64,000 nucleotides of DNA from Gracilinanus agilis (taxonomy: Eukaryota). A model generated the notes under the pieces. That model was not told the origin of the DNA, did no database searches, and saw only the letters and a program-made list of their open reading frames with translations. The stretch lies in NCBI RefSeq assembly GCF_016433145.1, contig NC_058130.1:149651596-149715595 (forward strand), in the 5' to 3' direction. The translations under genes were made by a program, and so were the position numbers. This document shows, one piece after another, positions 1 to 60,639 of this stretch (its first letter is position 1; each line of letters opens with the position of its first letter).

Positions 1-1076
1 AATTCATCCAGCTACCTGATTCATAAAGCACAGTTCTGCTCATGTCACTCCTCAGATGATGAAATATAAGTGGCTCCCTAAATGCCTTTAGGACAAAATA
101 TAAACACTTCTGTTTGGCACTTAATCTGACTTCAGTCTATCTTTTTCAGATCTATTACATATAACTCTCCTTTACACATCTACATTCCAGCCAAAGTGGC
201 TTACTTGACTGATGTTCCCATAGACACTATAATCAGTGATCCAATTCTGTGTTTCTATACCAAGTCATACTTCATAACTGAATATTCTACCCCTTTGCCT
301 CCTCTTTCTGGAATTCCTGGAATACCTCTATCTCAGTTTCAGTTTAAATACCATTTCCTTTTTAGAGGTCTTTTCTTTTTATCCTAACTGTTAATATTTA
401 TTAAAGCTTCCCCCCAAATGCTTTAACTATGTGGGTCTTATTAGAAGAAATAGATATTTCATAGCACAAACTATGCTGTGCTTCCTTAATCTTTTGATAG
501 TACTCTTTCCTCCCCATACTCTCTATAATATCTCTTGTATAAGGGCCCATGATCTGTGCATATGGTTTCTATAACACTGAAAAGACACATGGAGAAGACA
601 CCTTGGTTTCTCCATTCCAGGTATATTCTCTTCCCAATTAGATCATAAATCCTTTGAGGGCAAAGAGCTTATTTCATTCACTTCTAAAATCACTCCTTGC
701 CACCTATTCCTTGCATCATTGCCTAGCATAGTATTTTCCACACTGATGAGGACTGGTCCTCTTGATGTTATTGATCTATGTGACTTTATGGTGAAAAAAA
801 ACTCTCTCTAACAATGCAGGTTGACAAATTCTCTACAATTTATAGTTTTAGAGAGTTGTCTAGAGCAATGAGAAACAAAAGAAATTGTTAAAGGTAACAA
901 ATAATGGTCAAAAGTAGGACTTGAACTCTTGTCTTACTGGTTTTAAAGCCAACTTTCTCCATTATACTATGAGGCTTCTGACAGCTTAAGAAATATTTGT
1001 TTGATTTAACTGAACTTAAATAACTATGTTGTTTTCCTGAATTCAAACAAAATTATATTTGTTACACAATATAATG

Positions 1077-1195
1077 TAATAAGTTCCAAGTAATTGGGCC
1101 TCAGGGGCCCTGATCATGAAGTATAACAAAGTTTTCACTCTGTATATATCCAAGGCACAACTTTAAATTTCCTTAGAGACAAAGTAATCTCTAAG
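1077..1195 (+). promoter_or_regulatory. Candidate OR promoter module (paired homeodomain sites plus O/E-like sites) for the OR at 7742
   Basis: TAATAAGTT-ccaa-GTAATTGGGCCTCAGGGG, then 70 bp later CTTTAAATTTCCTTAGAGACAAAGTAATCTCTAAG. The same module with the same spacing lies upstream of all four intact ORs. Confidence 0.7.
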
Positions 1196-2355
1196 TACAG
1201 AAAGAGATTTAAATTGCTTTCTAGAATCTGTGACTGATTCTTTTGTGATTTGGAGGGCTGCTACTATGGGATCAGGACAGTGGTTCCCATTGTGTCTCTT
1301 GGCCAAATGAAATTTAGTTAAAAACAATCTACTTTCTTCCTTTATTTCCTATCCCTGAGCAACCTATACTTCCTTCAGTTCATTACAGTTGGAATAATTC
1401 TATTTTGGCACAATTTGAAAATTATTTCTAACAAAACTTAAAATTCAAATGTAAATAAGACCATAAAATTCTGAAGCAACATATTTTTCCATTAAAACTA
1501 ATTTTTGGTAACCCATCATCACTCTAAAGGAGCTTCCTTGTAGGAGGCAATCAGTTACTTGAGAAAGAAAATCAAGACAAAGCAATCTGCACTGTGTTGA
1601 AGTCTAAGAGGAAAGACAATCTCCCAACAAGAGGTAAATGGCTATAAAGACTAAAGACATAATCACTCAATATTCTGGTTCATAGAGATCAGTAAGGCTA
1701 AGCCTTTCTCTTTGTGTATGGACTTTTTCTTGATGCAAAGTGATTCTTGGACAAAATTGCAGATTCTTAGCTAGATCATCTAGACAGAGGGACAAGAGGG
1801 AGTGAGAAAATAAAAAAGTCAAAATTCTATAGAAAAAAGGAATGTACAAACTGAACAAAGATGAAGAACTAGGCCACTAATTTACACTTGCAGGAATTAA
1901 TACCCAAGTAAGGCCTGGAAATCCTGTTTTCACAGAGTATGGAGAGAATGATAAATATGGGAAAATTCATTAAATTATACAATATTTGTATTGCTCCCAT
2001 GTCAAGTATTATTTATGATCAAATAAAGTTGTTTGTTCTGTCTCCTAGAAGAGATAGTAGAGAAGGTGTAATAACATTTCTTATTTTTCTGGTTTTCAAA
2101 GACTGAAAAATGAATAAAAGAATGCATGAATAAAAAATCATTTCCTAAGTACTTGTTCTGTGCAGAACACTGTACTAAGCTCTGAGGATATAAATTGAAA
2201 GGATTGACAATCCCTTTCCCTAAGAAATTTAATTTCTAATATAAGGAAATGGTACAGGCTGGAGGTTTTAGGTACAAGTACAATAGAAAATCCACATGCT
2301 CCATAGGGTGCAGCAAACAAACAAACACATCTTCTTTAACTCTACTTCTGATAAC

Positions 2356-2359
<4 letters not shown>

Positions 2360-2396
<37 letters not shown>
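2360..2396 (+). repeat. (TG)n microsatellite
   Basis: Direct reading; the paralogous tract at ~20323-20372 is interrupted by TA units. Confidence 0.95.
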
Positions 2397-2400
<4 letters not shown>

Positions 2401-3615
2401 TGTGTTATTAAACTATTTGGTAGCACTAAGGACACTGGTGTTGAGAAATTTGTTTCTTTTTTCTTCAACGAATATTACTGCTGAAGGAGTAAGGGTTATA
2501 GCACCTGTAGAGGTAGTTTTCAAATGTCATCCCCACAAGTCTTGATTCCTTGGATGATGGTTTCAAGGGCTAGGCTAGAAGCAAGACCATCGGTCTGTTT
2601 CTTGAAGAGACGCCCCACCTAAGCAGCTAAAAAGCAAGATAATAGGCATGACGGATCCTAGTATCTATATTTCCAATGTAAAGTTAGTAATGATGAATAA
2701 TTCATAGATTATAGATATCTGAATGGAATAATTCTAAGACCCAGTGGTAGAGAACAGTGAATGAGGGGTCATAAATACACCTGAGACATCAAGATTAATT
2801 GTGTTTAGTGTAAAAGTAAGTAGATTTGTAATGCCCATGAAAACTTGAACTAAGTGATAAAATCCCTCCAAATCAAGAACGTGTAATTCTAAAGTAAGTT
2901 AACAACTGTTCCTTGTACTGGATATCAAAGTTTTGCCATACTGGGAACATTTGGTAGATGTAGAAAACAGAATATTTGAGGGCTCTGGTTCTGGTGACAA
3001 GACAGGCTAAAAGGTCAGATGGAAGATATGAGGTAATACTAACATCATTGTCTGTGCCCTAAGTATTGTCAGGATTCTTCTTAAAAATTTGATCTCTTTA
3101 TTCCTAGAAATAATATTTGTGGATACCAGGCATCTCCTACCTAATAGGTGGTATCAGTTGGTATATACAAAAATAACCTTTGCCCTAGGATCTGTACTTA
3201 TTAATTCTTCGTTTTTATATTCTTATGACTTCCTGCATCCTATACACTGCCTCTTTGCCAAGACCTGCCTTTGACTTATCTCTGTATTTGAATGCTTGCT
3301 TGACTGTAGTATGGTATCTGATTGCCTGAGTTCATACCATTGACATTCTTATCCCACCTTGAAGAAATGACTTGCTCAACAATAGACCTTCAACATAAAT
3401 CAAATTAGGGGCAAGACTGAAATGTACTTTGAGGCAAGGGAAGATAGTTCTGGGAGCAGTGTTCATTGAAAATAGATGCTTCTCTTCAATATAGCTAGGA
3501 TGGGCACAACAACTAGGAAAGTCATTAGTGTAACTGTGATAGAAAAGAGCAGAACGAAAAGAAAATTTTACACCTAGAACAGGTATTCCAGAATGTCACC
3601 GAAGACACTTTATAG

Positions 3616-3821
3616 CAGGGGTCGGCAACGTATGGCTCTCGAGCCATATCTGGCTCTTTTGAGGGCCAGATATGGTTCTTTCTGCAGGAGCCATAAAGTT
3701 AATTTTTTTCAGGCGCTGTTACAGGATCATGCACTGTGAGCACTGTATGACTCTCACAAAATTACCTTTTAAAAAATGTGGCATTTATGGCTCTCAAGGC
3801 CAAAAAGGTTGCCGACCCCTG
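3616..3821. mobile_element. Non-autonomous hAT (Charlie-like) MITE, 206 bp
   Basis: TIR CAGGGGTCGGCAAC...GTTGCCGACCCCTG; perfect 8-bp TSD CTTTATAG at 3608-3615 and 3822-3829. Confidence 0.93.
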
Positions 3822-4772: not shown

Positions 4773-4905
4773 AAACCAGGTGGTGCAAGTGGATAGAATC
4801 CTGAGCCTGGAGTCAAGAAGACCTAAATAGAAATCTGGCCTTAGTCACTTATTAGCTATGTGACCATAAACAAGTTGCTTAATTATATTTATCTCAGTTT
4901 CCTCC
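4773..4905 (+). mobile_element. MAR1/MIR-type core SINE fragment (paralogue at ~22740-22872)
   Basis: ggtggtgcaagtggatagaatcctgagcctggagtcaagaagacct...gtgacc...ctcagtttcctc, the tRNA-derived core-SINE pattern. Confidence 0.7.
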
Positions 4906-5873: not shown

Positions 5874-7741
5874 TGACTGTCTGGTTTTCCTGGGAAAGGT
5901 AGTTCTCATTCTCAGCTATAGGAATGATCCTCTTCTGGACCTAGTATACCTGAACTGATGATGTTCTATCTCAAAACACATCCTAATCAATGTGATAGAA
6001 AATCATTAGTTCAGGTACACTAGGTCCAGAAGAGAATCATTTACTTTCAAGAATGGGGATGCTCAATTTAAGCTATTCTCTGTGCACATATATAAGTTAA
6101 TCTCTAACTGCCATAGCTTCAATTAGGAAATGTAATGGTAGAAAGAAAATGATAGTAGGAATGAATTAAGGACCCTGAGAAATTCCTGAAAAAACTGTGG
6201 AAATGGAAATGCATTAGAAAACTATATGATCAAACACGTAGTACATTAGGGATATGATTGGGGTTTTGATGTTAAAGGGTTGTTCTACTTCAGATATGAA
6301 TAACATGGAAATAGGTTTTAAACAATGATACATTTATATCCCAGTGGAAACGCTTGTCAGATTCAGAAAAAGGGAGGAAAGCCTGGGGGGGGGGAAGGGA
6401 GAATCATGAATCTTGGGACCATGGAAAAATATTCTAAATAAAAAAGGGGGGAAATTCTTCCAGTATTCAGTTGAATTATTGGAGAAATTATGGGAGGAAT
6501 TGAATGAAGATTCGAGGATGGACTCACTGATTCATGGGTGAAAGGTATTTGTATTTAGGGTGTTTGTGTGTGAGTACATTTGCACCATACTGTCATATGA
6601 GTTAGGTCTAAAAGAAACATTGTAGATCATCTACTCCAGCCTCTCCTATTTTAAAGGTAAGGAAATTAAGGCATAGAGGCTACTGAATGGGTTAGAAATA
6701 TTTCTCATAAGATTCATTTCAGTGGCTCTAATCAAATAAACACATACACAAAGGTAAAGTAGGAAACCAATGATACTTTTTTTCCATTACCTTTTGTACT
6801 TTGTCCTTTTTTTCCAGCCCCAATTTTCATAATATCTTGCACAGACCTTTGGAAGCAAATGGATAATTTAATCTCTAAACATCAAATTTGACTAAATAAT
6901 TGTTCATAGATATTATAGTAAATGGAGAGTAATCAAAAAGTACTAGGAAGTACCTAAGGACAAATAAAAATGTTTGGTCTTGCCTCCTTTTCTCTTTTCC
7001 CTCACTAGATAAAGAAATTCTGTTTATCCACTCTGGTTGGAAGATATGTAAATTTTTCTCAGTCATATGAAGAGACTGGGGTACCAGTGTATCAAAGCAT
7101 ACCCAAGAGGGATTAGGATCCTATCAAACTAGATATAGAACCCTATGTTGGTCCATAACCCATTTTCATTCTAGTTAAAGGAATGTTTGTATGATCATAT
7201 TTATGGATAATGTAAATAATTTTATATTTGGTTAAAATGAGTTATTTACATGCACTTTCATGTTTATACTATATGAGGCATTAGTAAAAGTTTATGTGTT
7301 CATAAATATTCACTAAATATTTCCTAGTCTCATTCTGCCTTAATAGGAAATTGATGTATTTACTGGGAGGGTATTGAATATAACCCTGTATTGGGTCAGT
7401 CATTGTTTTACAAACCTTAATAATTCCTATGTCTAGAAAGCCTATTATGGGCTGCAATGTCATCACAGAGCTGTGTGTGTATGTGTGTGCATGTGTGCGT
7501 GTGCGTGTGTGAATATGTGTTTGTTTAATACTGCTGGGGTAAATATGAAAGCACTTTGACAGAGTTGGGAGAATGGGCACTGTACAAAATTTAGCTTGGA
7601 TATTGGAAATTTTTAATTAATGGGCATATGTCAAATACAGGATTCCCAAAAGTATAAGTGATATTTGAATTCATTATCATATGATAAATTTGATCCCTTG
7701 TCTCCTTATCTGAAATATTGTAGGTGGAAGAGAGAGAACAA

Positions 7742-8680
7742 ATGGAAAGACAAAATAAGACCACTGTGACTATATTCTTTCTTCATGGCCTTGATGGGTA
7801 TCCTGTATTTTACTTTATTTTTTTTCTGCTATGCCTTATCATGTACATTGTCATCCTATTGGGCAACAGTTTCCTCATTACAGTTAGCATCCTGGACTCT
7901 CACCTCCATACTCCCATGTACTTCTTTCTCAGTAATCTCTCTTTTCTGGACATCTGCTACACATCTTCTTCAATTCCCATGTTACTGGTGAACTTCCTTT
8001 CAGAGGAAAAATCTATTTCTTTCATTGGATGTGGGGTACAAATGTTCTTTTCATTTGCCATGGGAGCCACAGAGTGTGTGCTCTTGGCTATAATGGCATA
8101 TGACCGTTATTTGGCCATTTGCAAACCTCTGAGGTACCCTATCATCATGAACAAAGGACTCGGTGTGAAATTGGTGACAAGTTGCTGGATGGCAGGTGGA
8201 TTTACCTCAGTGATACAAACCACCTTAACTATGAAGTTGTCATTTTGTGGGAATATCATTGATTATCTTACATGTGAGATCCTGGCTGTGTTGAAATTGT
8301 CCTGTGATGATATTTCCCTCAATGTGACAGTAATGATGATATCAAACATCTTCATAATAGTTATTCCAGTAGTATTTATATTCATCTCCTACTTTTTCAT
8401 CCTCATTACCATCCTGAGAATCAATTCTGCTGAAGGGAGGAAAAAAACCTTTTCTACATGCTCATCCCATCTGACTGTAGTGATCATGTTTTATGGGACC
8501 ATCTTATTCATGTACATGAAGCCTGAATCCAAAGACTCCCATGCAACAGATGAGATGATTGCTCTCTTCTATGCTGTGGTCATTCCCATGCTGAACCCCA
8601 TCATTTATAGTCTAAGGAACAAAGATGTGAAAGCAGCTGTGAAAAAGCTCAGCAAAAATATCTTCTCACAGAGAATATGA
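7742..8680 (+). CDS. Olfactory receptor, class II family 13 (OR13C-like), 312 aa, intact
   Basis: Motifs [35 protein letters not shown] and [12 protein letters not shown]; N-K-T sequon at residue 5. The true start is the ATG at 7742; the ORF-track GTG at 7724 directly follows a splice acceptor (AG 7722-7723). Confidence 0.95.
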
Positions 8681-17698: not shown

Positions 17699-19067
17699 AA
17701 AGGCAGAAACAAGAGATGTTGTGCAAGCAGATGTAGTGAAACTAGATAATTGATTGGATATGAGTAAGAGAAAATGAAAAGTTGATCATGACTTTTAGTT
17801 TTTGATCTGCATTATTAGAAGGCTGTTGATACTCTGTAGATTCGGGGAAATTAGAAAGAGGAGCTAATCTTTTTTGAAAAGTTACTGCCATAGTTCATAC
17901 CCTAATCATTTTACATTTAACTAATCTAGCTTTTACAATATGTTCCTAATTCAACTCCTTGCATCTAATTTGTCTCTCTGTTCTCCAATTCATCCAGCTA
18001 CCTGATTTATAAAGCACAGTTCTGCTCATGTCACTCCTCAGATGATGAAATATAAGTGGCTCCCTAAATGCCTTTAGGACAAAATACCTCTGTTTGGCCC
18101 TTAATCTGACTATAGTCTATCCTTTTCAGATTTATTATGTATTAATCCACTTTAATCATTCTACATTCCAGCCAGACTGGATTACTTGACTGATGTTCCC
18201 ATATACACTATAGTCAATGATCCAATTCTGTGCTTCTGCCCCAAGTCATATTTCATACCTGAATATTCTACGTCTTTTCCTCCTCTTCCTGGAATTCCTG
18301 GAATACCTATCTCTATTTCAGTTTCAGTTTAAATACCATTTCCTTTTAGAGGTCTTTTCTTTTTTATCCTAGCTGTTAGTATTTATTCAAGCTTCCCCCC
18401 AAATGCTTTAATTATGTGGGTCTTATTAGAAGAAATAGATATTTCATAGCACAAACTATGCTGTGCTTCCTTAATCTTTTGATAGTACTCTTTCCTCCCC
18501 ATACTCTCTATAATATTTCTTGTATAAAGGTTTAAGATGTGGGCATATGGTTTCTATAACACTGAGAAGACAAATGGAGAAGACACTTTGATTTCCATTC
18601 CAGGCACATTCTCTTCTCAATTGGATCATAAATCCCTTGAGGGCAAAGGAGCTTATTTCATTCATTTTTCAAATCATTCTTTGCCACCTATTCTTTGCAT
18701 CATTGCCTAGCATAGTATTTTTCACACTAATGAAGACTGGTCCTCTTGATGTTATTGATCTCGGTGACTTTATGGTGAGAAACTTCTCTCTAACAATGCA
18801 GGTTGACAAATTCTCTACAATTTATAGTTTTAGAGAATTGTCTAGAGCAATGAGAGGCAAAAGAAGTTGTTAAAGGTCACAAAGAAATAATCTGTCAAAG
18901 GTGGGACTTGAACTCTTATCTTTCTGCTTTTAAAGGCAACTTTCTATCACCATTATACTATGTGGCTTCTGAGAGCTTAAGAAATATTTGTTTGATTTAA
19001 TTGAACTTAAATATCTATGTTGTTGTCTTGAATTAAAACATAGTTATATTTGAAACATAGTATAATA

Positions 19068-19186
19068 TAATAAGTTCAAAGTAATTGGGCCTTAGGGGCC
19101 CTGATCATGAAGTATCATAAACTTTTCACTTTGTACATATCTAAGGCAGAACTTTAAATAACCTCAGAGACAAAGTAATCTCAAAG
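19068..19186 (+). promoter_or_regulatory. Candidate OR promoter module for the OR at 25714
   Basis: TAATAAGTT-caaa-GTAATTGGGCCTTAGGGG, then 70 bp later CTTTAAATAACCTCAGAGACAAAGTAATCTCAAAG. Confidence 0.7.
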
Positions 19187-21582
19187 TATAACAAGATCTT
19201 TAAACTGCCTTCTAGAACCCATGACTAATTCTATTGTGATTTGGAGGGCCTCTACTATGGGGTCAGGACAGTGGTTCCCATTGTGTCCCTTGGCCAAATG
19301 AAGTTTAGTAAAAAGCAAATTAATTTTCTTTTCTTCCAGTGTTTCCTATCCCTGAGGAAGCTAGGCTTCCTTCAGGTCATCACACAGTTGAAATAAGTCT
19401 ATATCTGCAAAATTTGAAAATTATTTCTAACAAAACATACAACTGAAATGCAAATAAGATCATAAAATTCTGAAGCAACATATTTTTCCATTAAAACTAA
19501 TTTTTGGAAAACCATCAAAACCTGAAGAAGCTTCCTTATAGGAAGCAATCAGTTACTTGAGAAAGAAAATCAAGACAAAGCAATCTGCACTGTGTTGAAG
19601 CCTAAGAGGAAAGACAATCTCCCAAATAGAGGTAAATGGCTATAAAGACTAAAGACATAATCACTCAATGCTCTGAAATATTCTGGTTCATAAGAATCAA
19701 TGAAGCTAAGCCATTCTCTTTGTGTATGGAATTTTTCTTGATGCAAAGGCATTCTTGGGACACAAATGCAGATTCTTATCTTGATCACTAGGCAGAGGGA
19801 ACAAGAGGGAATGAGATAATAAAAAAGTCAGAATTCTGTAGAAAAAAGGAATGTACAAACTGAACAAAGATGAAGAACTGGGTCAATAATTTACACCTGC
19901 AGGAATTAATACCCAGGTGAGGCCTGGAAATCCTGTTTTGACAGAGTATGGAGAGAATGATGAATATAGAAAATTAATTAAATTATACAATGTTTGTATT
20001 TCTCACATATCAAGTATTATTTATGATCAACTAAAGTTGTTTGTTCTGTCTCCTAGAAGAGATAGTAGAGAAGGTGGAATAACATTTCTTATTTTTCTGG
20101 TTTTCAGAGACTGAAAAATGAATAAATGAATGCATGAATAAAAAACATTTCTTAAGTACTTGTAAGGACTGACAATCCCTTTCCCTAAGAAATTTAATTT
20201 CTAATATAAGGAAATGATGTAGGCTGGAGGTTTTAGGTACAAGTACAATAGAAAATCCACCTGCTCCATAGGGTGCAGCAACCAAACAAACACATCTTCT
20301 TTAACTCTACTTCTGATAACACTGTGTGTGTGTGTATGTGTGTGTGTGTGTATGTGTGTGTATGTGTGTGTGTTATTAAACTATTTGGTAGCACTAAGGA
20401 CACTGGTGTTGAGAAATTTGTTTCTTTTTTCTTCAACAAATATTACTGCTGAAGGAGTAAGGGTTATAGCACCTGTAGAGGTAGTTTTCAAATCTCATCC
20501 CCACAAGTCTTGATTCCTTGGATGATGATTTCAAGGGCTAGGCTAGAAGTAAGACCATCAGTCTGTTTCTTGAAGAGACGCCCACCTAAGCAGCTAAAAA
20601 GCAAGATAATAGGCATGACGGATCCTAGTATCTATATTTCCAATGTAAAGTTAGTAATGATGAATAATTCATAAATTATAGATATCTGAATGGCATAATT
20701 CTAAGACCCAGTGGTAGAGAACAGTGAATGAGGGTTCATAAATACACCTGAGACTTCAAGATTAATTGTGTTTAGTGTAAAAGTAAGTAGATTTGTAATG
20801 CCCATGAAAACTTGAACTAAGTGATAAAATCCCTCCAAATCAAGAACGTGTAATTCTAAAGTAAGTTAACAACTGTTCCTTGTACTGGATATCAAAGTTT
20901 TGCCATACTGGGAACATTTGGTAGATGTAGAAAACAGAATATTTGAGGGCTCTGGTTCTGGTGACAAGACAGGCTAAAAGGTCAGATGGAAGATATGAGG
21001 TAATACTAACATCATTGTCTGTGCCCTAAGTATTGTCAGGATTCTTCTTAAAAATCTGATCTCTTTATTCCTAGAAATAATATTTGTGGATACCAGGCAT
21101 CTCCTACCTAATAGGTGGTATCAGTTGGTATATACAAAAATAACCTTTGCCCTAGGATCTGTACTTATTAATTCTTCGTTTTTATATTCTTATGACTTCC
21201 TGCATCCTATACACTGCCTCTTTGCCAAGACCTGCCTTTGACTTATCTCTGTATTTGAATGCTTGCTTGACTGTAGTATGGTATCTGATTGCCTGAGTTC
21301 ATACCATTGACATTCTTATCCCACCTTGAAGAAATGACTTGCTCAACAATAGACCTTCAACATAAATCAAATTAGGGGCAAGACTGAAATGTACTTTGAG
21401 GCAAGGGAAGATAGTTCTGGGAGCAGTGTTCATTGAAAATAGATGCTTCTCTTCAATATAGCTAGGATGGGCACAACAACTAGGAAAGTCATTAGTGTAA
21501 CTGTGATAGAAAAGAGCAGAACGAAAAGAAAATTTTACACCTAGAACAGGTATTCCAGAATGTCACCGAAGACACTTTATAG

Positions 21583-23840: not shown

Positions 23841-25713
23841 TGACTGTCTGGTTTTCCTGGGAAAGGTAGTTCTCATTCTCAGCTATAGGAATGATCCTCT
23901 TCTGGACCTAGTATACCTGAACTGATGATGTTCTATCTCAAAACACATCCTAATCAATGTGATAGAAAATCATTAGTTCAGGTACACTAGGTCCAGAAGA
24001 GAATCATTTACTTTCAAGAATGGGGATGCTCAATTTAAGCTATTCTCTGTGCACATATATAAGTTAATCTCTAACTGCCATAGCTTCAATTAGGAAATGT
24101 AATGGTAGAAAGAAAATGATAGTAGGAATGAATTAAGGACCCTGAGAAATTCCTGAAAAAACTGTGGAAATGGAAATGCATTAGAAAACTATATGATCAA
24201 ACACGTAGTACATTAGGGATATGATTGGGGTTTTGATGTTAAAGGGTTGTTCTACTTCAGATATGAATAACATGGAAATAGGTTTTAAACAATGATACAT
24301 TTATATCCCAGTGGAAACGCTTGTCAGATTCAGAAAAAGGGAGGAAAGCCTGGGGGGGGGGGGGGAAGGGAGAATCATGAATCTTGGGACCATGGAAAAA
24401 TATTCTAAATAAAAAAGGGGGGAAATTCTTCCAGTATTCAGTTGAATTATTGGAGAAATTATGGGAGGAATTGAATGAAGATTCGAGGATGGACTCACTG
24501 ATTCATGGGTGAAAGGTATTTGTATTTAGGGTGTTTGTGTGTGAGTACATTTGCACCATACTGTCATATGAGTTAGGTCTAAAAGAAACATTGTAGATCA
24601 TCTACTCCAGCCTCTCCTATTTTAAAGGTAAGGAAATTAAGGCATAGAGGCTACTGAATGGGTTAGAAATATTTCTCATAAGATTCATTTCAGTGGCTCT
24701 AATCAAATAAACACATACACAAAGGTAAAGTAGGAAACCAATGATACTTTTTTTCCATTACCTTTTGTACTTTGTCCTTTTTTTCCAGCCCCAATTTTCA
24801 TAATATCTTGCACAGACCTTTGGAAGCAAATGGATAATTTAATCTCTAAACATCAAATTTGACTAAATAATTGTTCATAGATATTATAGTAAATGGAGAG
24901 TAATCAAAAAGTACTAGGAAGTACCTAAGGACAAATAAAAATGTTTGGTCTTGCCTCCTTTTCTCTTTTCCCTCACTAGATAAAGAAATTCTGTTTATCC
25001 ACTCTGGTTGGAAGATATGTAAATTTTTCTCAGTCATATGAAGAGACTGGGGTACCAGTGTATCAAAGCATACCCAAGAGGGATTAGGATCCTATCAAAC
25101 TAGATATAGAACCCTATGTTGGTCCATAACCCATTTTCATTCTAGTTAAAGGAATGTTTGTATGATCATATTTATGGATAATGTAAATAATTTTATATTT
25201 GGTTAAAATGAGTTATTTACATGCACTTTCATGTTTATACTATATGAGGCATTAGTAAAAGTTTATGTGTTCATAAATATTCACTAAATATTTCCTAGTC
25301 TCATTCTGCCTTAATAGGAAATTGATGTATTTACTGGGAGGGTATTGAATATAACCCTGTATTGGGTCAGTCATTGTTTTACAAACCTTAATAATTCCTA
25401 TGTCTAGAAAGCCTATTATGGGCTGCAATGTCATCACAGAGCTGTGTGTGTATGTGTGTGCATGTGTGCGTGTGCGTGTGTGAATATGTGTTTGTTTAAT
25501 ACTGCTGGGGTAAATATGAAAGCACTTTGACAGAGTTGGGAGAAATGGGCACTGTACAAAATTTAGCTTGGATATTGGAAATTTTTAATTAATGGGCATA
25601 TGTCAAATACAGGATTCCCAAAAGTATAAGTGATATTTGAATTCATTATCATATGATAAATTTGATCCCTTGTCTCCTTATCTGAAATATTGTAGGTGGA
25701 AGAGAGAGAACAA

Positions 25714-26652
25714 ATGGAAAGACAAAATAAGACCACTGTGACTATATTCTTTCTTCATGGCCTTGATGGGTATCCTGTATTTTACTTTATTTTTTTTCTG
25801 CTATGCCTTATCATGTACATTGTCATCCTATTGGGCAACAGTTTCCTCATTACAGTTAGCATCCTGGACTCTCACCTCCATACTCCCATGTACTTCTTTC
25901 TCAGTAATCTCTCTTTTCTGGACATCTGCTACACATCTTCTTCAATTCCCATGTTACTGGTGAACTTCCTTTCAGAGGAAAAATCTATTTCTTTCATTGG
26001 ATGTGGGGTACAAATGTTCTTTTCATTTGCCATGGGAGCCACAGAGTGTGTGCTCTTGGCTATAATGGCATATGACCGTTATTTGGCCATTTGCAAACCT
26101 CTGAGGTACCCTATCATCATGAACAAAGGACTCGGTGTGAAATTGGTGACAAGTTGCTGGATGGCAGGTGGATTTACCTCAGTGATACAAACCACCTTAA
26201 CTATGAAGTTGTCATTTTGTGGGAATATCATTGATTATCTTACATGTGAGATCCTGGCTGTGTTGAAATTGTCCTGTGATGATATTTCCCTCAATGTGAC
26301 AGTAATGATGATATCAAACATCTTCATAATAGTTATTCCAGTAGTATTTATATTCATCTCCTACTTTTTCATCCTCATTACCATCCTGAGAATCAATTCT
26401 GCTGAAGGGAGGAAAAAAACCTTTTCTACATGCTCATCCCATCTGACTGTAGTGATCATGTTTTATGGGACCATCTTATTCATGTACATGAAGCCTGAAT
26501 CCAAAGACTCCCATGCAACAGATGAGATGATTGCTCTCTTCTATGCTGTGGTCATTCCCATGCTGAACCCCATCATTTATAGTCTAAGGAACAAAGATGT
26601 GAAAGCAGCTGTGAAAAAGCTCAGCAAAAATATCTTCTCACAGAGAATATGA
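25714..26652 (+). CDS. Olfactory receptor, class II family 13 (OR13C-like), 312 aa, protein identical to 7742-8680
   Basis: ORF-track translation is identical and no nucleotide difference was spotted in the CDS; acceptor AG at 25694-25695. Confidence 0.95.
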
Positions 26653-34600: not shown

Positions 34601-36061
34601 AAGAAATATATGGAAAATTCAAAGAAAGTTTGTTTGATTGTGTTGATATGCAGTTTTATTTTTTTTTAATTTTTTTTAAACCCTTAACTTCTGTGTATTG
34701 ACTTATAGGTGGAAGATTGGTAAGTCTAGGCAATGGGGTGCAGTTTTATTTTTAATAAAAATTTAATTTATTTTTAAGAGTATAGCCTTGGAATTGAGGA
34801 GCCATCACAGTAACAGCACCCTCCAGAACAAAAGTCTTATTTCCTGCTCAGCCCTCACAGTCTTTCATCTGGCGAAACAATTATTGGGGAGAGAAGTCAA
34901 TCATCCCTACTACTGTCTACTAACTGTCATTCATAAGGTGGACAAGCCAGTTTAATTGACTCAATTAGACATGTTGGGGAGAGGCAGAAGGCTGCATATT
35001 TCAGGCAAGCCATTGACCATCACCACTTAGATCATCATCTTCCCTCAGACCTCTGTTGAAACAACCCAGGTCCTTCTATCCAGAACCTTGGGAATTGCAA
35101 TGCTCTCAGCCAAGTTCTTTCCATCATCACCCTGAGAAGAACTGCTATCTGCATCCATTGAAGACACAGAAAAGAAAGTTCTTGTCCTGAAAGACTCTGG
35201 TACTGTCAACTAGATACTGTTATGATATTATCAGTAGAAGTGACATGAAAGAGGCATTGTCATCTGCTTTTACCATTAAACCCTAAGGATATGGGACTTT
35301 TACATCATTTTATCCATGTTTTGACTCCCTTATCAAAATGTAAGTTTCTTGAGATCAAGGACTCTTATTTTTTTGTTTCTTTTCCCACTGCTTCACATGT
35401 TGTAAAAACTTCAAAAATATGTTATTCATTCACTTATTTCTCTAGTTTGTAAGGATGTTTCTGTATCTCAGCTCTGTAATTCAGTAAATCATCTTTTCCT
35501 CTCAAGGTAATGTCATATATAAATAATATGATAAACTCACAAATCATCTATAAAAATGTTAAAAGCAACAGGGCCAAACACATATATTTGGATCAATCAT
35601 ATAGACACCTATTAGACCAATTTACTAGACTGGCATCAATATAGTATTCATCACCTAATGGATGCAGTCTTTCAATCAATTCTAAATTCATCTAACTATA
35701 TGCACACAGTATCCATCTTTCAATTTTGTTTATATGGAAACAATTTAACATGTGAGTATAGATAGTAAAAATCTATTCATGCCTGGAAGCTTGAACTCAT
35801 GCCACAATCTTATCATACATTCCCACTGTGTGCAAAAGGTTGGAGTTATTGGGAAGTAGTTCAATATATGAAGATAATGGTAAGTTAAACCAGGATGTTT
35901 CACAACTAACAACACTCAGAGATAAGAGAGATTTGGGAGATGTTGCTAAGTCATACACGTAATTAATTGCTCCATTCCCCCTATGTTTATATTGACATGG
36001 AGAAATGTAAAATTGTTTTCCTCTTCTCACTTTATTTGCTGCATCATCAATTAAAACTATC

Positions 36062-36181
36062 TAATAAGTTTGATGTAATTAGATGGTTACAATATCCCCA
36101 TAGCTTTGTAAATTGTTAACTTTCACACAGTTCCTATAAAAAAGATTTAAATGACTTTAGGGATTACAAAGATTCCCTGAG
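36062..36181 (+). promoter_or_regulatory. Candidate OR promoter module for the OR13D1-like gene
   Basis: TAATAAGTT-tgat-GTAATTAG, then 69 bp later ATTTAAATGACTTTAGGGATTACAAAGATTCCCTGAGG. Confidence 0.62.
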
Positions 36182-39100
36182 GAACAATTTTGGAAAGGTT
36201 GTGAGGATGGAGAGCTAAACTGACATCCATATGCAGTGGCTGATTATTTGGAATCACCCACAGTCCAGGGACTATCACAGGCATTTATGGTAGAAGTGGA
36301 AATATAGTGATGTTCTCTACTCAAAAAAATGACATGGCCTTAATGCAGAAAAGGGAACATTCTCTTGAGTTAGGCAACATTTCATAAATATTTCTGAATG
36401 TCATAAGAACAAAGGTAATAATATTAACTAGCTTGGGTAAAATGAATTTTAAGCCATAAAGAAGGCTACTAATAAGTAAGCCAGACAGATATAATAATTC
36501 ATTCGGTGCTTTCTCAAACTACCAAAACATGCTTGAAAAATGCTCTCGAAGTAGTTTGTGTTCAAAAACAGGAGGAGTACCAGCTAAGTGGAAAGGACAG
36601 GAGCAATCCTGCATCTGAAACTTACAGGTAAATGAGAATGTGAGAAGGGTTGTTTTCAGAGCTATCAATGGAATTGGAAACTGGGATGGGCATTTGGTAA
36701 GAAATAATAAAAATAAAAGTCATGTAAAATGAGAGGACTGAACTCAATTATCTCTAAAATCCCTCTCAACTCTGAATCTATGGTCCTAAAATCCTACGTT
36801 CTATATCCTAAGTAGAATAGATGGGACTTGCAATGGAAACCACGGGTAATTCCATAAAAGGAAGAGATAACAAATAGAAATATATGGTTGCTGGAGCAGA
36901 AAGGAATATTTTTCTGATTATTGGAATCTATCATCATATTGCTCATTGTCAGCCTCCCTCAAATTGTTGAGAGTTAGCTTTGAAGTCACTTTTAGATGTG
37001 TTTTCTTATCCACGAATCACATGAACCCTAAGTTTGCTTTCTGTTTTAATATCCTATATTTTAAAAGAGAAGTTATTAACATTTTTTATGTCATGAACAC
37101 ATTTAAGGAGTCAAGTAAAGGCTATGAATCTCTTCTTAAAATAACTTTCTCAAATGCACAAGATAAAAATCTAATTATATTGACATGCAGTTATGAGCTA
37201 TAATTTGCAAAAACAAATTCCTATTTCATGGTAAAGATGCCTTTCCTAACGTTTCTTAAAGTCCTGCTATTTTATCTCCTGTATTCTAAGTTATTTTCTA
37301 CCCTTCTGTTCTTTTTTAAGTTCTTTTTGTATTATCTTCTAATGTTTTGCCAGCTGTAACATGATTAATTCTGTTTCAAATTTATTCTAGCCCAAACATT
37401 CTATAGTTTTTATTCCAAATATACTACTCTTGGACAGGAATAACTAAAAAAAAGTTGTTGTACATATCTCAGAGAGAAGAAAGATTTGTATGCCCTATTT
37501 ATTTCTCTCTTCTTAGATTATTCAAGGATATGGTTGAATATATAAACCAATATATAAAATACATAAGTGTAAATTTAGAGTATATTACTTCATTCTTCGT
37601 CTTTATATATCTCAAAGACCAGTACAATGGTTGGTATACAGCAGGTGCTAAATAAAACTTTGTTATTTAATTGTGTATACTTTTATGATGCTCTTGCTAC
37701 CTATTTCTTTGAAATGCCCTCTCTATCTCATTTTCTGAATCCTCAATTTCTATTTACTGCTTATAGCTGAGGGTCCCTCAAGTTAAGACTTTTGATAAAA
37801 AAAACTCTCTTTACATTTTGTCATGGAAGGTGAAGTAGGTATTATTCTTCATAGATAAGTCTATTTAATGAGACTGCCTAAAAAGAGAGCATGACTAGTA
37901 CACCAGGATAAAGGGACTTGTAGTAACCAATGGGGCTTAGACGATTAAGAAATAACTGACCTCGAGGAATAATTTATAAAGCATTAGGCATATCACCTCA
38001 AAATGACAAAATTGTGCTGACTGGGTCCTCTATACATTTTTGCAATTGAACAACAAATAGACTCTTGGGAAATATTTTTAATTTTTTTGGTTTTATTCTT
38101 TTAATATTGCCATAAAAATGATGAATATGAAGAATTCAGATATACTATATTGTATTTTGAAGGAAGGTGAGAATTATGAAAGGAATCAAAAGAGGAATCT
38201 CAGATTTTTATCTTAGATATCCCACACCTGTCTCGTCCCATAAATAGAGCGGAAAGATAAATACACGGCTCTGCCGGTCTGTATTGATCTTTTGAGGGGG
38301 TCCAGATAAAAATATCTACTTGAGATTCTAATTTCTCTTAATAGCTCCCAACACTTAGGAAGATTTATATGGACTGATGTGTGAAGTAAGCAGAATTTTT
38401 AAAATGAAAGACAATCTTTGAGTGCATGTTCTTCAGCAAATAACCTAACATTTCTCTATTTTGTTTGATTTCAACTTTGCAGTCTTCACTTAGCAGACTT
38501 TAGATTTAGATTACTAGATCTAAAGCTAAAAGGAGCCTCAAAGGTCATCTTGTTTTAAAGTTGAGGAAACTGAGTTCCAGGGAAATTAAGCGAATTATAG
38601 TGCCGCAAAGATTGCAAGAATCAGAAGGAAGATTTGAATGCTGGTCCCTTGATGGCAGAGCTAGAGCACTTTCCATTATACCAAACTCTTTTCTATGTCC
38701 TTGCCTTTCCTACCTTATTAAGATTAATTTCTTCTGATATATACTGTTTCAAAGTCCTTTCTCTATCATGTGCCCTCAATTTTTTAAATCTATCTTCATC
38801 TACATTACCCTTTTCTATATGATTTTTGATGAATGTTTTGTTATATAACTTTTAAAAATAATACTTTCACTCTCTAATAAGCCCTTCACAGAAACCTGCT
38901 GTATAGCAAAGATGGAAAAGCAAAATAAACCAGCAATGTAGTACACATCCAACCACACATATCTCATTCCACTCCTATAGAAATTCACTAACCTGCCCCG
39001 AAGATGAAGATATGCTCTATTGTCAATATTCTGAGGTCAAAATTGGGCAATGCACTGCGCAGTTTTCTAATATTTTTTGCCTTGTTTTCCTTTTCATTAT

Positions 39101-39495: not shown

Positions 39496-39733
39496 AAAAT
39501 AATTTTTAAAAAAATATTGTAGGTCAAACTTGTTTCAATTTGCATGCACATTTTTCACATTTTCCTTACTTTTTCTCTTATACATATATTTTAACAATGT
39601 AGCACTGAATGACTTAAAAATCAATATAGAAAAGGGAAAAAAGGATGAGGCTAATTTCAAGTGTTATTATTAATTCCAGTTGCTTTGAGATATGTCCTTT
39701 CCTAAGTTTTGCAGGTGCCACAGTCAATCTAAC

Positions 39734-40675
39734 ATGAATGAGGAGAATCATACAACCGTGACCGAGTTTTTTCTGGTAGGACTTTCCCATTACCCAGGCC
39801 TCTTGCTCTCTCTTTATGTTCTCTGCATGGTTATGTATCTAGTAATCCTGTTGGGAAACAGCATCCTCATTATCATCAGCATCCTGGATCCCCGCCTTCA
39901 TACACCTATGTATTTTTTCCTTGGGAATCTCTCTTTTCTGGACATCTGCTACACATCCTCCTCTATTCCTCAAATGCTGATAATTGTTATGTCTAAGAGA
40001 AAATCTATTTCCTTCACTGGGTGTGCCCTGCAGATGGTTATTTCTCTTGGATTAGGGTGCACAGAGTGCATTCTCCTGGCAGTGATGGCCTATGACAGGT
40101 ATGTTGCCATCTGCAATCCTCTCAGATACAGCATCATCATGAACAAGGGGCTCTGTACCCAGATGGCTGCTTGGACTTGGATACTAGGGTTTTTGGTCTC
40201 CCTGGTACAAACTGTACTTGCTCTCATAAAGCCTTTCTGTGGGAATGTCATTGATCACCTTACCTGTGAAATCCTGGCCCTTCTTAAGCTTCTCTGTGGA
40301 GACATCTCCCTCAATGTGTTTATCATGACAGTTGCAAGTATTGTTATTTTAATCATTCCTCTAACTCTCATTTTCTTCTCCTATATCTTCATCCTCTCTA
40401 CCATCCTGAGGATCAATTCTAGTGAAGGGAGGAAGAAAGCCTTTTCCACCTGCTCAGCCCACCTCACTGTGGTGGTCTTGTTCTATGGTTCAGCCCTTTT
40501 CATATACATGAAGCCCAAGTCCAAGTACACTAAGACATCTGATGAGCTTATTGGGCTCTCCTACGGAATCATCACTCCAATGATGAACCCCATTATCTAC
40601 AGCCTGAGGAACAAGGAAGTCAAAAATGCTGTGGAGAAATTCCTCATTAAGAATCTATACTTAAAGAAAATGTGA
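39734..40675 (+). CDS. OR13D1: Olfactory receptor OR13D1-like, 313 aa, intact
   Basis: Recalled human OR13D1 segments (ALQMVVSLGLG.TEC, DHITCEILALLKL, YGSALFMYMKPKSK..SDEIIGLSYG) match closely. ATG at 39734 (MNEENHT); acceptor TTTTGCAG ends at 39714. Orthology is inferred from memory, not from a tree. Confidence 0.9.
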   Translation: MNEENHTTVTEFFLVGLSHYPGLLLSLYVLCMVMYLVILLGNSILIIISILDPRLHTPMYFFLGNLSFLDICYTSSSIPQMLIIVMSKRKSISFTGCALQMVISLGLGCTECILLAVMAYDRYVAICNPLRYSIIMNKGLCTQMAAWTWILGFLVSLVQTVLALIKPFCGNVIDHLTCEILALLKLLCGDISLNVFIMTVASIVILIIPLTLIFFSYIFILSTILRINSSEGRKKAFSTCSAHLTVVVLFYGSALFIYMKPKSKYTKTSDELIGLSYGIITPMMNPIIYSLRNKEVKNAVEKFLIKNLYLKKM

Positions 40676-52472: not shown

Positions 52473-53744
52473 ATTTAAGACATCTATCTGCACCTCTACT
52501 TGTACTTCTTCCCTTAGTAATTTCTTTCTTAGACATCTGCTGCATACCTCTATTCCTTCCATTCTGGTCAGCTTCTTACCTCAAAGAAAACCCATTTCAT
52601 TCTCTAAATATGTAATGCAGATATTTCTTGGCTTAGCTATGCAGACTATGGAGTGTGTCCTCTCTTGTAGGATGGAACTTGACTGCTCCGTGGTCATCTG
52701 CAGTCTTCAAGATACCTTAACATTGGGAGGAAGACTGCATATGTGCCAATGGCAGAGCTGTCTCTTAGGTAATAAGGGTGTTAATTCACCGGTACACACA
52801 GTTTTTTTTTCTGTTATTAGTTTTAAGTTAAAGTAAATCAAGTCCAAGCCCAAGGAATCACTTAATTTAAATAAACTTTAAACTACAGTTGAACACTTTT
52901 CCATGTTTTATGTAGTCATGATTCCTATGACAAATCCTTTAGTCTATAAAACTCAGGAACAACAATGAAGGCAATAAAATATCTGTTAAAAAGGAAGTTC
53001 TTTAGCAAACAAATATGAAAGATCTTGTGCTTTGGTCCAATTTATGATAGGAACCTAAAGAATAGAAACTTCAATAGATCACAACTATCCTTGTCTACCC
53101 ACCTTCTGTTGCTCTGTCCATGTACTACTATGTTCCGGGGGAATCCTCTCTGAGTTGCTCAACAGGACTTCCTTTAGATTTTTTGCTTTTGCTTGGATAT
53201 CATTGGAGTAGATGAGCCATCCATAAGTAATCTGTCAGGGTCACTTAATGATTAGTCCACCTCTTTTTCCAGTTATACATTTCTCTGATGAAGTATTTTC
53301 TGCCTTTTTTTTTCTTCAATTCTTCAATAGTCATGCATTATAGGCTATTCACAGCCACCATTCACCTCTCCACTGCCTTTTAACTGTCTAAATGTGTATT
53401 CTTCAGATGTTAGTATTGAAAAACAAGTACATACAATAGTTGAAGGGAGTGGGAATTTCTGATTATGATGAAACAGAGCAGAAATGAAAAGGTAAAAAAG
53501 GAACGGAAAAGAGGAGAAAAAAGGATAGAAAAGAACAAAACCAGAGTAAAGCAAAGATAAAAGAAAGAAAAGCTCTACTTGGGATGTGGTGTGATCTCAC
53601 CAAGAAGAATAGAGAATATAGCTTCAATATATGAACAACTGGAGGTGGTGAATACATAAGAGACTTGAAGATTTATCATGCTTCCATGTGAAATTGATTT
53701 TAATAATAACAATGATGATGATGATGATGATGATACATACCAGT

Positions 53745-56912: not shown

Positions 56913-57845
56913 TCAGAGTCTTTGTGAAAATACATTTCTTCTCAGAAGCTTTTTCACAGCCCCTTTCACTTCTTTATTTCTCAAGCTATAGATAATGGGG
57001 TTTAGCATGGGAGTCACCACTCCATAAAACAAAGTAATGAACTTATCAGTTTCTTGAGAATCTACAGATGATGGTTTCAGGTACATGGAAAGAGCAGTCC
57101 CGTAGTATAAGATCACCACAGTAAGGTGAGCTGAACAGGTGGAGAAAGCTTTGCTTCTTCCATCTGCTGAGTTGATTCTTAGGATGGTGAAGAGAATGAA
57201 GCTATATGAGATGCAAATTAAGAGCATTGGGATTGGAAGGAGAAGCACACTGACCACAAGCATTATCAAGTCCATGACCAATGAGCTTGTGCAAGCTAAT
57301 TTCAGAAGTGCTAGGATTTCACAAGTAAAGTGATTGATGGAACTCCCACAAAGAGGCAGTTGCAGGGCAGAACTGGTTTCTAGTAAGGCAGTGAGGCAAC
57401 CTGTTATCCATGACCCAGCTGCCATCTGCAGACAGACCCTCTTGTTCATGATGATAGGGTATCTAAGGGGGTGACATATTGCCACATACCGATCATATGC
57501 CATCACGGCAAGGAGCAAACACTCTGTGGACCCCATGGCAAGGGAGAGATACATTTGTAGGGCACAACCTATGAAAGGAACAGTATTTCTTTTGCCTATG
57601 AATTTCACCACCATAGGAGTTACAGAGGATGTCGTGTAACAGATGTCCATGAATGAGAGATTGCTGAGAAAGAAGTACATAGGAGTATGAAGATGGGTAT
57701 CTAGGATGCTGATTGTAATGAGAATGCTGTTTCCCAGTAGAGTTACCAAGTACATCAAGAGACACAAGATAAAGAGGATGATTTCAAGTTTGGGATATTG
57801 GGAAAACCCCTCCAGAGTGAATTCTGTCACTGTACTCCAGTTCAT
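56913..57845 (-). CDS. OR13F1: Olfactory receptor OR13F1-like, 310 aa from the first in-frame ATG after the uORF stop, intact
   Basis: Recalled human OR13F1 segments (QMYLSLAMGSTEC, AGSW.TGCLTA, LLLP.PMLLICISY, YGTALSM.LKPS.VDSQE.DKF) match closely. ATG at 57845 (MNWSTVTEF). Orthology is inferred from memory. Confidence 0.9.
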   Translation of the reverse strand: MNWSTVTEFTLEGFSQYPKLEIILFILCLLMYLVTLLGNSILITISILDTHLHTPMYFFLSNLSFMDICYTTSSVTPMVVKFIGKRNTVPFIGCALQMYLSLAMGSTECLLLAVMAYDRYVAICHPLRYPIIMNKRVCLQMAAGSWITGCLTALLETSSALQLPLCGSSINHFTCEILALLKLACTSSLVMDLIMLVVSVLLLPIPMLLICISYSFILFTILRINSADGRSKAFSTCSAHLTVVILYYGTALSMYLKPSSVDSQETDKFITLFYGVVTPMLNPIIYSLRNKEVKGAVKKLLRRNVFSQRL

Positions 57846-57854
57846 TTCAGTCAC

Positions 57855-57872: not shown

Positions 57873-60100
57873 CTGAAGGAATATAGAGAAAATATTACCT
57901 AGGTAATATCATTAGTACATATAAAGAGTACATATAAAAATACATATATGTACACATAGTACATATAAAAACTTTATTTTCTCTACTTTGACATTTAATC
58001 TTCTAAGAAGATTATTCTAAAATGTACATTCTCCCATCAAAAAAGTATGGAATGATAAGTATGCATAAGAAATGAAGGGGCAGATTCAAAAATACTGGAT
58101 TGGATAACATCCTTAGGAAAAGTTCCTTCTATATCTGAGATTTTTTTTATTTTTCCTGCAAAGACAGGATATGTTGATAAATGATAAACATTAACACAAG
58201 GTAGCCTATCCAAAGCACCAATAGGATGAAATTAAGAGAATCAAGACTTATGATAGGAAAATATTTAAAAAACTATACTGATAAGCTTAGTATGCATGAA
58301 GTGGTGAGCAAAAAAAAAAAATAAAAAAGATTTCAAAGGAATTGGATATAAACTTTCATCTGAGTAGCCTTCTTTGCCTTGATAGTTTCCTATATCTGGC
58401 ATATACTCTCTTCTTTTCTCCACCTTTGAAAATCCCTTTCTTCCTGCAGAGTCCCCAAAAGATATCTCTTCTACCTTTCTAAACTCCCCCAGTTGCCAAG
58501 TGTTTCTTCCCTCTTGATATTACTTTTTTATCTTTTCTAAGTCTTTGTATTTACATATTTATTTGAGCAGAGTTTTATTGCAATAGCAGAATATAAATTC
58601 CATGGTTTTGATAATCATTTTTCTTTTGCTTCCCAAGAGCTTAGAATGGTGCTTTACACCAAATGTTAAGGACTTTAAAAATGCTATGCTGTGGCCCATA
58701 ATATTTTGGATATTATGATTTTGGAGATAAAAAGTGCTTTAACTAATTTTGGTAATTTAAAAATAATAATGATATTTTACTTTCCTGGTATGTGTCATAA
58801 TGAGTTATACTATTAGTAAAATGACATTTCCCTCTTACATATGAACACTAACCTTAAAATAGTTCAGACCACAAACTTGCAAAGAACTTTACTATAAATG
58901 ACTACTCTTATTTAAGGGATAATGTAAATGCCTGAACACTGTGCCATGAGTAAAAATACAAAAAAAGAACAAATTTAACAAGTTTTGAGATATGTAAATA
59001 ACAAATGTAAGAAAAAATTGTATAATGGAAAGAATGAATTTGGAGAATGAGAACATGGATTGAAATTCCAGCACTTATCCTTACTGCCTCTATAATGTTA
59101 GCCAAGTCACTTAATTATGAGCCTCAGTTTCTTCTCAAAAATTATGATGTTGGATTGAGATTCTATAGAATTTTCATATATTGACCTCTGAAGCACATGC
59201 TGTACCTTAAAATCTGAACTCCCTTGAATTTAGGAGAAGAGAGAGAAAAGGAATACTTAATAACTTAAACATTGTAGGGTAATTTGTTAAATTCCAATTA
59301 GTGTAGTGCAGAGGGGAGAGACTGGAAGTGAAGAAAGAGTTTAGGAAAGCATTGCCATAGGCAAAGAGAGAGGAAATGTGCAATAGCCATGTTCAAGAAG
59401 GGACAGATTTTCAAGATATTTCTCTGGAAAGAAGTAATTGACAAAACTTAGTTATTCTCATGTTGGGAAGAGAGAGAAAGAGAAATAGACAAAGAGAGAG
59501 AGACAGAGAAGGGAATGAAAATTGATTCCAATATAAGTTTGGGTAACTGAGACAAGTCTTGAAGTAAAAGCTCTTAAACCAGTCATCTTCAGGTATTAAA
59601 GTTCACTATCTTATTTGTTTTATTGTGTTAAAAGCAACATAGTTCTAATGAGTCATGTAGTAAAGTAGGTGAGACCTTAGAAAGTATCATAGGATCGAAG
59701 ATTTAGACATCAAGTCAAACCATCTCGTTTTATAAGTAAGGAAATTGAGGAGAATAGAGGTTAAATGACTTTCCTAGCATCATGTGTCTTGTAAGTTTAT
59801 GAGGCAGAATTTGAATTCGAGTCTTTCTGGCCCCAAACCCAATGTGTTCTCCCCTGAGTCTTTCTCCCAGCCATAAGAAAAATGCTCACTTACCTTATCT
59901 TTCAGGGTTTCAATTATGAGCACATGTAATATCAATAACTCTCCTTTTTATTCTTTTTAATTTGAGTTCTCCTCTTATTCACATTTTCCTGATAGCTCTG
60001 AAAATAAAATTTACTTGCTGAAGAACAACGCCAATCTTGGCCACTAGGAAATCAGTCTATGCTTACTGTCATCCACATTTTTCATCTATCTCTTGTTGCT

Positions 60101-60221
60101 TTTAGGGACTTTTAAGGTTCCCTGAGCAATTTAAAGCTATGACTCTCAAACATGAGGAGTCAGGAACTTCATAATGTTTTGGGAATAAGGTCCCAAAGAC
60201 CCAATTACAATCAGCTTCTTA
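60101..60221 (-). promoter_or_regulatory. Candidate OR promoter module for the OR13F1-like gene
   Basis: Minus strand: TAAGAAGCT-gatt-GTAATTGGGTCTTTGGGA, then 71 bp later CTTTAAATTGCTCAGGGAACCTTAAAAGTCCCTAAA. A perfect donor AAG|GTAAGT follows (intron starts at 59893). Confidence 0.7.
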
Positions 60222-60639
60222 GAATGTTTTTGGAATGTTGTTCATTTGTACTTTGGTCTGAAACATGTCTAACAACCAAAGGCAGGTAAGCGAGAGGCAA
60301 ATAGTTAAGTAATTTGCTCAAGGTCACACAGATAGCAAATGTCGGGTACAATTTGACCCCAATTCCTCTGACTTCAGAGCCAGAACTGTTCCCACCATAT
60401 CAAGCTACTTCACTTTCTTTCCTCATCATCTAACCTAACATGAGAGATTAGGACTAATTCTTTTATAGGAGGGTGACCAAAATAGGGGAAAAACAGGTTT
60501 TAAATATTATTCCAGAATGTTTTACCTCCTTGTTTTTTTCAGACTATAGGTGAAGAGATTGAGTATGAAAAGTAACCACAATAAAATAAGAACATAAATA
60601 CAACTAATGTCTGTAAACCTGAGAAAGGCTTTAAGTAGG

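Follow-up and report, generated by a model that had tools for sequence, protein, structure and literature searches.

The window analysed here, a 64-kb stretch of Gracilinanus agilis DNA, holds four intact olfactory receptor (OR) open reading frames: A, B and C on the forward strand, and D on the reverse strand. From the splice signals in their sequence, these genes are predicted to have the usual OR two-exon structure: strong predicted donors lie 242-482 bp past the first TTTAAAT box of an upstream module that is described below (+242 in D, +472 to +482 in A, B and C), and predicted acceptors lie 10-40 bp before the likely true ATGs. The coding exons and the predicted exon 1 features are as follows:

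7724..8680, + strand: coding exon of gene A, with a predicted acceptor AG at 7722-7723 and the true ATG probably at 7742
~1249 (from homology to mouse) to 1633, + strand: predicted exon 1 of gene A; donor GAG/GTAAAT, GT at 1634
25696..26652, + strand: coding exon of gene B, protein identical to that of A; acceptor AG at 25694-25695
GT at 19632, + strand: predicted exon 1 donor of gene B
39692..40675, + strand: coding exon of gene C, with a predicted acceptor whose AG ends at 39714 and the true ATG probably at 39734
GT at 36628, + strand: predicted exon 1 donor of gene C, CAG/GTAAAT, at a conserved position (+482 here, +479 in the Sminthopsis orthologue)
56913..57854, - strand: coding exon of gene D, with a predicted acceptor whose AG ends at 57873 and the true ATG probably at 57845
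G at 59893, - strand: predicted exon 1 donor of gene D, AAG/GTAAGT, its position conserved in Sarcophilus (+242 vs +245)

The program-made ORF starts at 7724, 39692 and 57854 precede the likely true start codons, and the leader of gene D contains a short upstream ORF (ATGGAAGACAGAGGATAA). In protein searches the best named homologue of gene C is OR13D1, and those of gene D are OR13F1/OR2K2. Genes A and B belong not to OR13C but to a marsupial-specific clade annotated as '13D1-like', sharing 88% identity with a wallaby protein, and only 64-67% with placental 13D1 or 13C. The best named homologues (OR13D1, OR13F1/OR2K2 and OR13C7) place the genes in OR family 13, or MOR262. Self-comparison of the window revealed that positions 1-10128, which include gene A, are duplicated at 17987-28046 with 95.3% identity. 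Within this duplication, identity is 98-100% from ~2.5 to 9.0 kb (the intron and the coding exon, the proteins being identical), 76-94% beyond 9 kb, and 85-89% in the module-bearing part; this pattern would fit gene conversion across the gene body, with promoters that are older and have diverged.

Upstream of each of the four genes, and always in the sense orientation, lies a copy of the same module. A first-pass annotation of this DNA had reported four copies, and its description of their places, sequence and orientation holds: when up to two mismatches are tolerated, the 21-bp pattern for the first part of the module, TAAKAAGYT-N4-GTAATTRG, matches the window at 1077-1097(+), 19068-19088(+), 36062-36082(+) and 60201-60221(-) alone. 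These four occurrences compare with 0.20 expected, and four or more were seen in 0/100 shuffles, for a pattern that was selected post hoc. The elements of each copy (HD1 and HD2, first and second homeodomain sites) are listed here, together with a further copy and its neighbour:

1065..1234, + strand: putative promoter module of gene A; HD1 TAATAAGTT at 1077, HD2 GTAATTGG at 1090-1097, then directly GGGCCTCAGGGG
1162-1168 and 1208-1214, + strand: first and second TTTAAAT boxes of module A (nhmmer E 1e-26 for the module)
19063..19225, + strand: putative promoter module of gene B, a duplicate of that of A; first TTTAAAT at 19153
36051..36216, + strand: putative promoter module of gene C (OR13D1-like); HD1 at 36062, HD2 GTAATTAG at 36075-36082
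36146, + strand: first TTTAAAT of module C, then ACTTTAGGGATT and TTCCCTGAGGA
60063..60233, - strand: putative promoter module of gene D (OR13F1/OR2K2-like); HD1 TAAGAAGCT from 60221, HD2 GTAATTGG, then GTCTTTGGGACC
from 60135, - strand: first TTTAAAT of module D, then GCTCAGGGAA and GTCCCTAAA
51359..51525, + strand: fifth, decayed module copy; ATAATTGG at 51379, TTTAAAT at 51454, spacing 74 bp, HD1 lost
52513..52824, + strand: decayed OR pseudogene remnant, matching residues 63-174 of the intact ORs at ~34% identity by tblastn

The distance from the start of the module to the start of the ORF is 6647 bp in A, 6628 bp in B, 3630 bp in C and 2367 bp in D. Counting from the T of TAATT, the first T of TTTAAAT is reached after 71, 71, 70 and 72 bp in copies A, B, C and D; the 70/70/69/71 given previously had been counted from a different reference point. 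An Olf/Ebf (O/E)-like GGGG/GGGA element directly follows the first part of the module in A, B and D, and not in C, just as had been claimed. The count of four needs to be qualified on two grounds: copies 1 and 2 lie within the one segmental duplication and have a recent origin in common, so that the independent copies are three, not four; and the fifth copy, ~1 kb upstream of the OR pseudogene at 52513-52824(+), had been missed (nhmmer E 1.4e-14 with a profile of ten copies, and E 9e-6 with a profile built from the window alone). In the Sarcophilus locus L005, a weak match (15837-15919(-), E 0.04) occupies the syntenic place and orientation, downstream of the gene D orthologue.

We compared ten OR13-family loci, each with 10-kb flanks, using a profile built solely from window copies A, C and D, i.e., the three independent copies. 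The matches to this window-only profile were:

Sarcophilus orthologue of gene D: E 8e-28
Sminthopsis A-like gene: E 3e-19
mouse Olfr155 (L007:7087-7203): E 1.6e-10
rabbit OR2K2: E 2e-8
lynx 13C7-like gene: E 4e-8
dog OR13D1: E 1e-6
two Sminthopsis 13D1-like genes: E about 1e-5 each
rabbit OR13F1: E 5e-3
Mus pahari OR13D1: E 7e-3

Each of these matches is a single sense-strand block upstream of an OR13-family ORF, at syntenic positions in seven other species; all 15 module copies are sense and lie 0.8-6.6 kb upstream of the ORF. No unrelated match with E<0.01 was found in the 273 kb that were scanned on both strands, the sole further match close to that threshold being the reverse strand of one of the modules itself (E 0.012), nor did that scan reveal dispersed copies unrelated to gene position or orientation, of the kind that an interspersed repeat or transposable element would leave. 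The ten-copy profile, applied to three loci outside its training set, gave E values of 5e-21, 2e-16 and 3e-14, and it also picks up the fifth window copy. In the Sminthopsis locus L001 there is a second module at 14713-14876, 3.8 kb downstream of the 13D1-like ORF, which is presumably the promoter of a tandem paralogue past the end of the locus.

Direct comparison of whole upstream regions also singled out the module, which was the top match for C vs dog, for D vs rabbit 13F1, for D vs rabbit 2K2 (E 4e-10), and for A vs a Sminthopsis paralogue (E 8e-12; the latter is a 75%-identical relative of gene A and not a direct orthologue). The sole match between the upstream regions of A and mouse that scored better than the module was a (TG)n microsatellite, which we rejected. 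Between marsupial orthologues, conservation extends beyond the module (277-292 bp at 74-80%). Among the window paralogues themselves, ordinary blastn aligned the coding exons of A, C and D alone; with sensitive settings the module was the third-best A-D match, and it fell outside the top 8 for A-C and C-D. Smith-Waterman alignment with permissive scores returned meaningless alignments as long as the window, and these were discarded. Pairwise similarity between the paralogues is weak, and our argument therefore rests upon the multi-copy pattern, the orthologues and the profile scans.

That same weak similarity, along with the AT-richness and the post hoc choice of the motifs, is what might be said for a chance likeness in AT-rich DNA or for a piece of an interspersed repeat. 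We assign this reading a negligible probability: the pattern occurs four times against 0.2 expected, the syntenic places in seven other species are where the profile picks up the block, at E values as low as about 1e-28, and nowhere else does it do so, and the block occurs once per gene and always in the sense direction, so that the profile scans and the upstream comparisons effectively refute it. The first-pass annotation had itself named AT-rich background and a repeat family as outcomes that would undo its proposal; the profile scan yielded neither, with exactly one copy for every OR13 gene and no further ones across the 273 kb. Its view that the module has been kept across OR13 subfamilies is also sustained, with copies in 13D1, 13F1, 2K2 and 13C genes of marsupials and placentals.

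The anatomy of the module was derived from an alignment of 15 copies (A4), in which the TAATT of the second homeodomain site and the CTTTAAAT box are near-invariant. The first homeodomain site, TAATAAGYT, is kept in marsupials and dog, whereas the mouse, Mus pahari, rabbit 13F1 and lynx copies have lost much of it. Four bases further on, the second site, (R)TAATT(R)G, is strongly conserved and is kept in placentals; it is likely to be an Lhx2 site. The 'tandem homeodomain' of the first-pass annotation thus survives in its second member and is poorly kept in its first, as far as placentals are concerned. TAATTRG is followed by GGGAC and, a few bases on, by ATCCC, which together form a pair of Olf/Ebf-like half-sites. 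The first TTTAAAT box, ~72 bp past TAATT, is followed by ACTTnnGGGA and then by TCCC. A second TTAAATTG box, ~48 bp past the first, is present in A, the Sminthopsis A-like gene, dog, Mus pahari and mouse; in window copies B and C it has degenerated, and D lacks it.

Another feature to emerge from this alignment is that the sequence between the conserved elements varies and its length is kept. In 14 copies the spacing from TAATT to the first box is 65, 66, 69, 70, 71, 71, 72, 72, 72, 72, 73, 73, 74 and 74 bp; a range of 65-74 bp describes a geometry that is constrained, and not 'rigid' as had been proposed. The 'two O/E-like sites' of that same proposal are recognizable as conserved GGGA/TCCC half-sites, and fare less well against the strict palindromic O/E consensus (TCCCNNGGGA, up to two mismatches), which yields 9 sites in the 15 copies vs 6 expected, i.e., no enrichment of canonical O/E sites in the module. 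The O/E-like sites of the module are mostly degenerate half-sites. The window modules have no GC peak around them.

The mouse homologue offers a mapped transcription start against which the module can be placed. The supplement of Young et al. 2011 (PMC3247239) gives the MOR262 ORFs and starts in mm9, with Hoppe 2003 as its source [17] for some of the starts; for Olfr155/mOR37A it lists a start 2746 bp upstream of the ORF (from cDNA) and another 2698 bp upstream (Hoppe 2003). In our Olfr155 locus (L007) these fall at 7255 and 7303, respectively, and the conserved elements are TAATT at 7096, the first TTTAAAT at 7168 and the second TTTAAAT at 7216: the start at 7255 lies 159 bp past TAATT, 87 bp past the first box and 39 bp past the second. 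Furthermore, exon 1 (7255-7430, donor AAG/GTAAGT) and exon 2 (acceptor at 9982, end 193 bp beyond the ORF) of this locus sum to 1348 nt, in exact agreement with the Ensembl transcript length of Olfr155 (Ibarra-Soria et al. 2014), and the Olfr155 donor was predicted exactly. The module thus occupies about -160 to -40 of the mapped Olfr155 start, which identifies it as a promoter; the proposal of the first-pass annotation that the module is a promoter is upheld by the homologous mouse block, with the published cDNA 5' end ~40 bp downstream of where it stops. These mouse 5' ends come from cDNA/RACE and not from cap-trapping, and so the true start could be further upstream.

This last point bears upon the notion that the block is a transcribed 5' untranslated exon, or an upstream alternative exon, that is kept for a reason at the RNA level. 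Such an exon would accommodate cDNA 5' ends that are lower bounds on the true start, and also the conservation between marsupial orthologues that runs past the module. We nevertheless regard it as very improbable, in that the cDNA and RACE 5' ends from mouse, which are independent of each other, are both found downstream of the block, and that conservation falls on classic DNA-binding motifs (TAATT, TTTAAAT, GGGA/TCCC) set in sequence of variable content and maintained length.

Our preferred interpretation is that the module is, very probably, the proximal or core promoter of OR family-13 genes (mouse MOR262, including the 'OR37' genes), an interpretation that rests upon homology, orientation, the presence of a single module for each gene, deep conservation and the start mapped in mouse. 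As is expected for a class II OR promoter, the module lies upstream of the transcription start, as seen through the mouse homologue only (the two starts being 39-87 bp past the last conserved box); its 15 copies are sense and upstream of a predicted non-coding exon 1 that would be spliced to the coding exon, the predicted splice sites being conserved in position in orthologues; and an Lhx2-type TAATT, near-invariant in A4, is situated within ~200 bp of the start. We hypothesize that the 13C, 13D, 13F and 2K2 subfamilies inherited the module from their shared ancestor, ahead of the marsupial-placental split. Transcription would begin ~40 bp past the second box, equivalent to ~87 bp past the first, and a short non-coding exon 1 would be made and spliced to the coding exon 2-6 kb downstream. 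By analogy with mouse, the G. agilis genes would use the same start, and one of the TTTAAAT boxes may act as a TATA element; OR promoters are known to contain homeodomain and O/E sites, and a subset has a TATA box at -60 to -10 (Young 2011).

Data on factor binding in mouse are pertinent here. Makronisos (mm10 chr4:43823778-43824191) is a Greek Island that is co-bound by Lhx2 and Ebf (Monahan et al. 2017, eLife 6:e28620), and its peak covers the start of Olfr156/mOR37B, the sister gene of Olfr155 (mm9 43836778 = mm10 43823906; the mm9 to mm10 offset of -12872 was verified on Olfr155 and Olfr275). The Olfr156 promoter, which on the strength of family membership we assume to carry the module, is among the approximately ten OR promoters with Lhx2 and Ebf binding in mature neurons assayed in bulk, and HOMER places an Lhx2 motif in 7/7 of the family-262 promoters that were looked up, with an Ebf motif too in 3/7 (Monahan et al. 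2017). We infer that Lhx2 and Ebf would bind the module. The composite-motif score of Makronisos is 1.02 (threshold 5-10) and 'No Ebf motif' was called for it, the Ebf ChIP signal being present; the Greek Island composite is also depleted in OR promoters (Monahan et al. 2017). With a score of 1.02 at Makronisos, the module lies outside the Greek Island composite motif class: no high-scoring composite was found, and the window copies have only a half-site beside TAATT.

It is conceivable that the module functions mainly as an enhancer-like docking element for Lhx2 and Ebf (a 'promoter Greek Island') with a supporting part in gene choice within the cluster, a reading that is compatible with the promoter interpretation. 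The listing of the Olfr156 promoter itself as Makronisos lends it some weight, as does the GGGA half-site that directly abuts HD2, where the module resembles the Greek Island composite (Monahan 2017) in having TAATT immediately beside such a half-site. As the main function we nonetheless consider it unlikely: just 1/7 of the family-262 genes looked up is flagged as a Greek Island, the low composite score and uncalled Ebf motif of Makronisos weigh against it, and one sense module per gene, adjoining the start site, is the pattern of a promoter. Unlike Greek Islands, the module is promoter-proximal and not intergenic. The analysis also links the OR13 promoter family to a Greek Island bound by Lhx2 and Ebf.

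A more speculative proposal, to which we give a small chance, elaborates upon the promoter interpretation: the OR13/MOR262 promoter might be a fixed, enhanceosome-like assembly of three units, each an AT-rich box (TAATT or TTTAAAT) with an everted GGGA...TCCC pair, whose spacing would have stayed near 72 and 48 bp from before the time when marsupials and placentals separated. Such an arrangement could let Lhx2 and Ebf co-occupy the promoter without a canonical Ebf site, as at Makronisos/Olfr156, and might underlie the 'patch' expression of the family. If true, it would exceed what was described for the mouse family.

Hoppe, Frank, Breer and Strotmann mapped, in 2003, the starts of mouse family 262 and reportedly found conserved motif blocks immediately upstream, along with EMSA binding and factors from yeast one-hybrid screening, and follow-ups from the same laboratory (Hoppe in 2006, Zhang in 2007) reportedly include a cross-species OR37 paper with opossum. 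The first-pass annotation treated this layout as not known to have been described: it was right in inferring a promoter, and probably wrong in taking the layout as undescribed. The MOR262/OR37 promoter of that study belongs to the same gene family as the window genes (HORDE family 13 = MOR262), and the block immediately upstream of the Olfr155/mOR37A start is a homologue of the window module (the E of 1.6e-10 above). In distinction to those mouse promoters, the window copies are marsupial, and include 13D1-like and 13F1/2K2-like members and a marsupial-specific clade; the statistics of the 65-74 bp spacing and the three-unit layout are described in the present analysis, without implying identity with the published motif blocks. 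What is new here, then, is the marsupial members, and conservation across 13C, 13D, 13F and 2K2 in both therian branches.

In common with the M71 and MOR23 minimal promoters (Vassalli 2002, 2011; Rothman 2005) and those in OR promoter surveys, the module is AT-rich with no CpG island, and has homeodomain and O/E-type sites (the latter mostly half-sites) within ~200 bp of the start; a subset has a TATA-like box, and the first exon is non-coding. The surveys (Michaloski 2006; Clowney 2011; Young 2011; Plessy 2012) found no fixed arrangement common to all ORs, whereas the module is a family-specific arrangement that is alignable over about 160 million years. The broader implication of our work is that the promoter has stayed alignable within one OR family for ~160 million years, and the tested profile can be used to annotate OR13 starts and 5' exons in marsupial genomes for which there are no olfactory RNA data. 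The mouse family-262 promoter has been studied since 2000-2007, and the conceptual gain is modest. What seem with high probability to be real OR promoters had been located, with their orientation and motif content, from raw sequence alone.

We also noted several minor features of the window. Assembly gaps occupy 48628-48765 and 63198-63596. LINE-1 ORF2-like fragments are present at 14596-15842, 28943-29966, 32575-33441, 43519-44080 and 62179-63916, and a SINE-like repeat of ~180 bp has at least five copies (e.g., 9663-9852, 39307-39494 and 47112-47273). The region 45.5-47.1 kb duplicates 55.9-57.0 kb. There are two further OR pseudogene fragments: one at 46955-47098(-), a 3' end similar to that of gene D, and the other at 60969-61179(-), a mid-gene piece just upstream of the putative gene D promoter.
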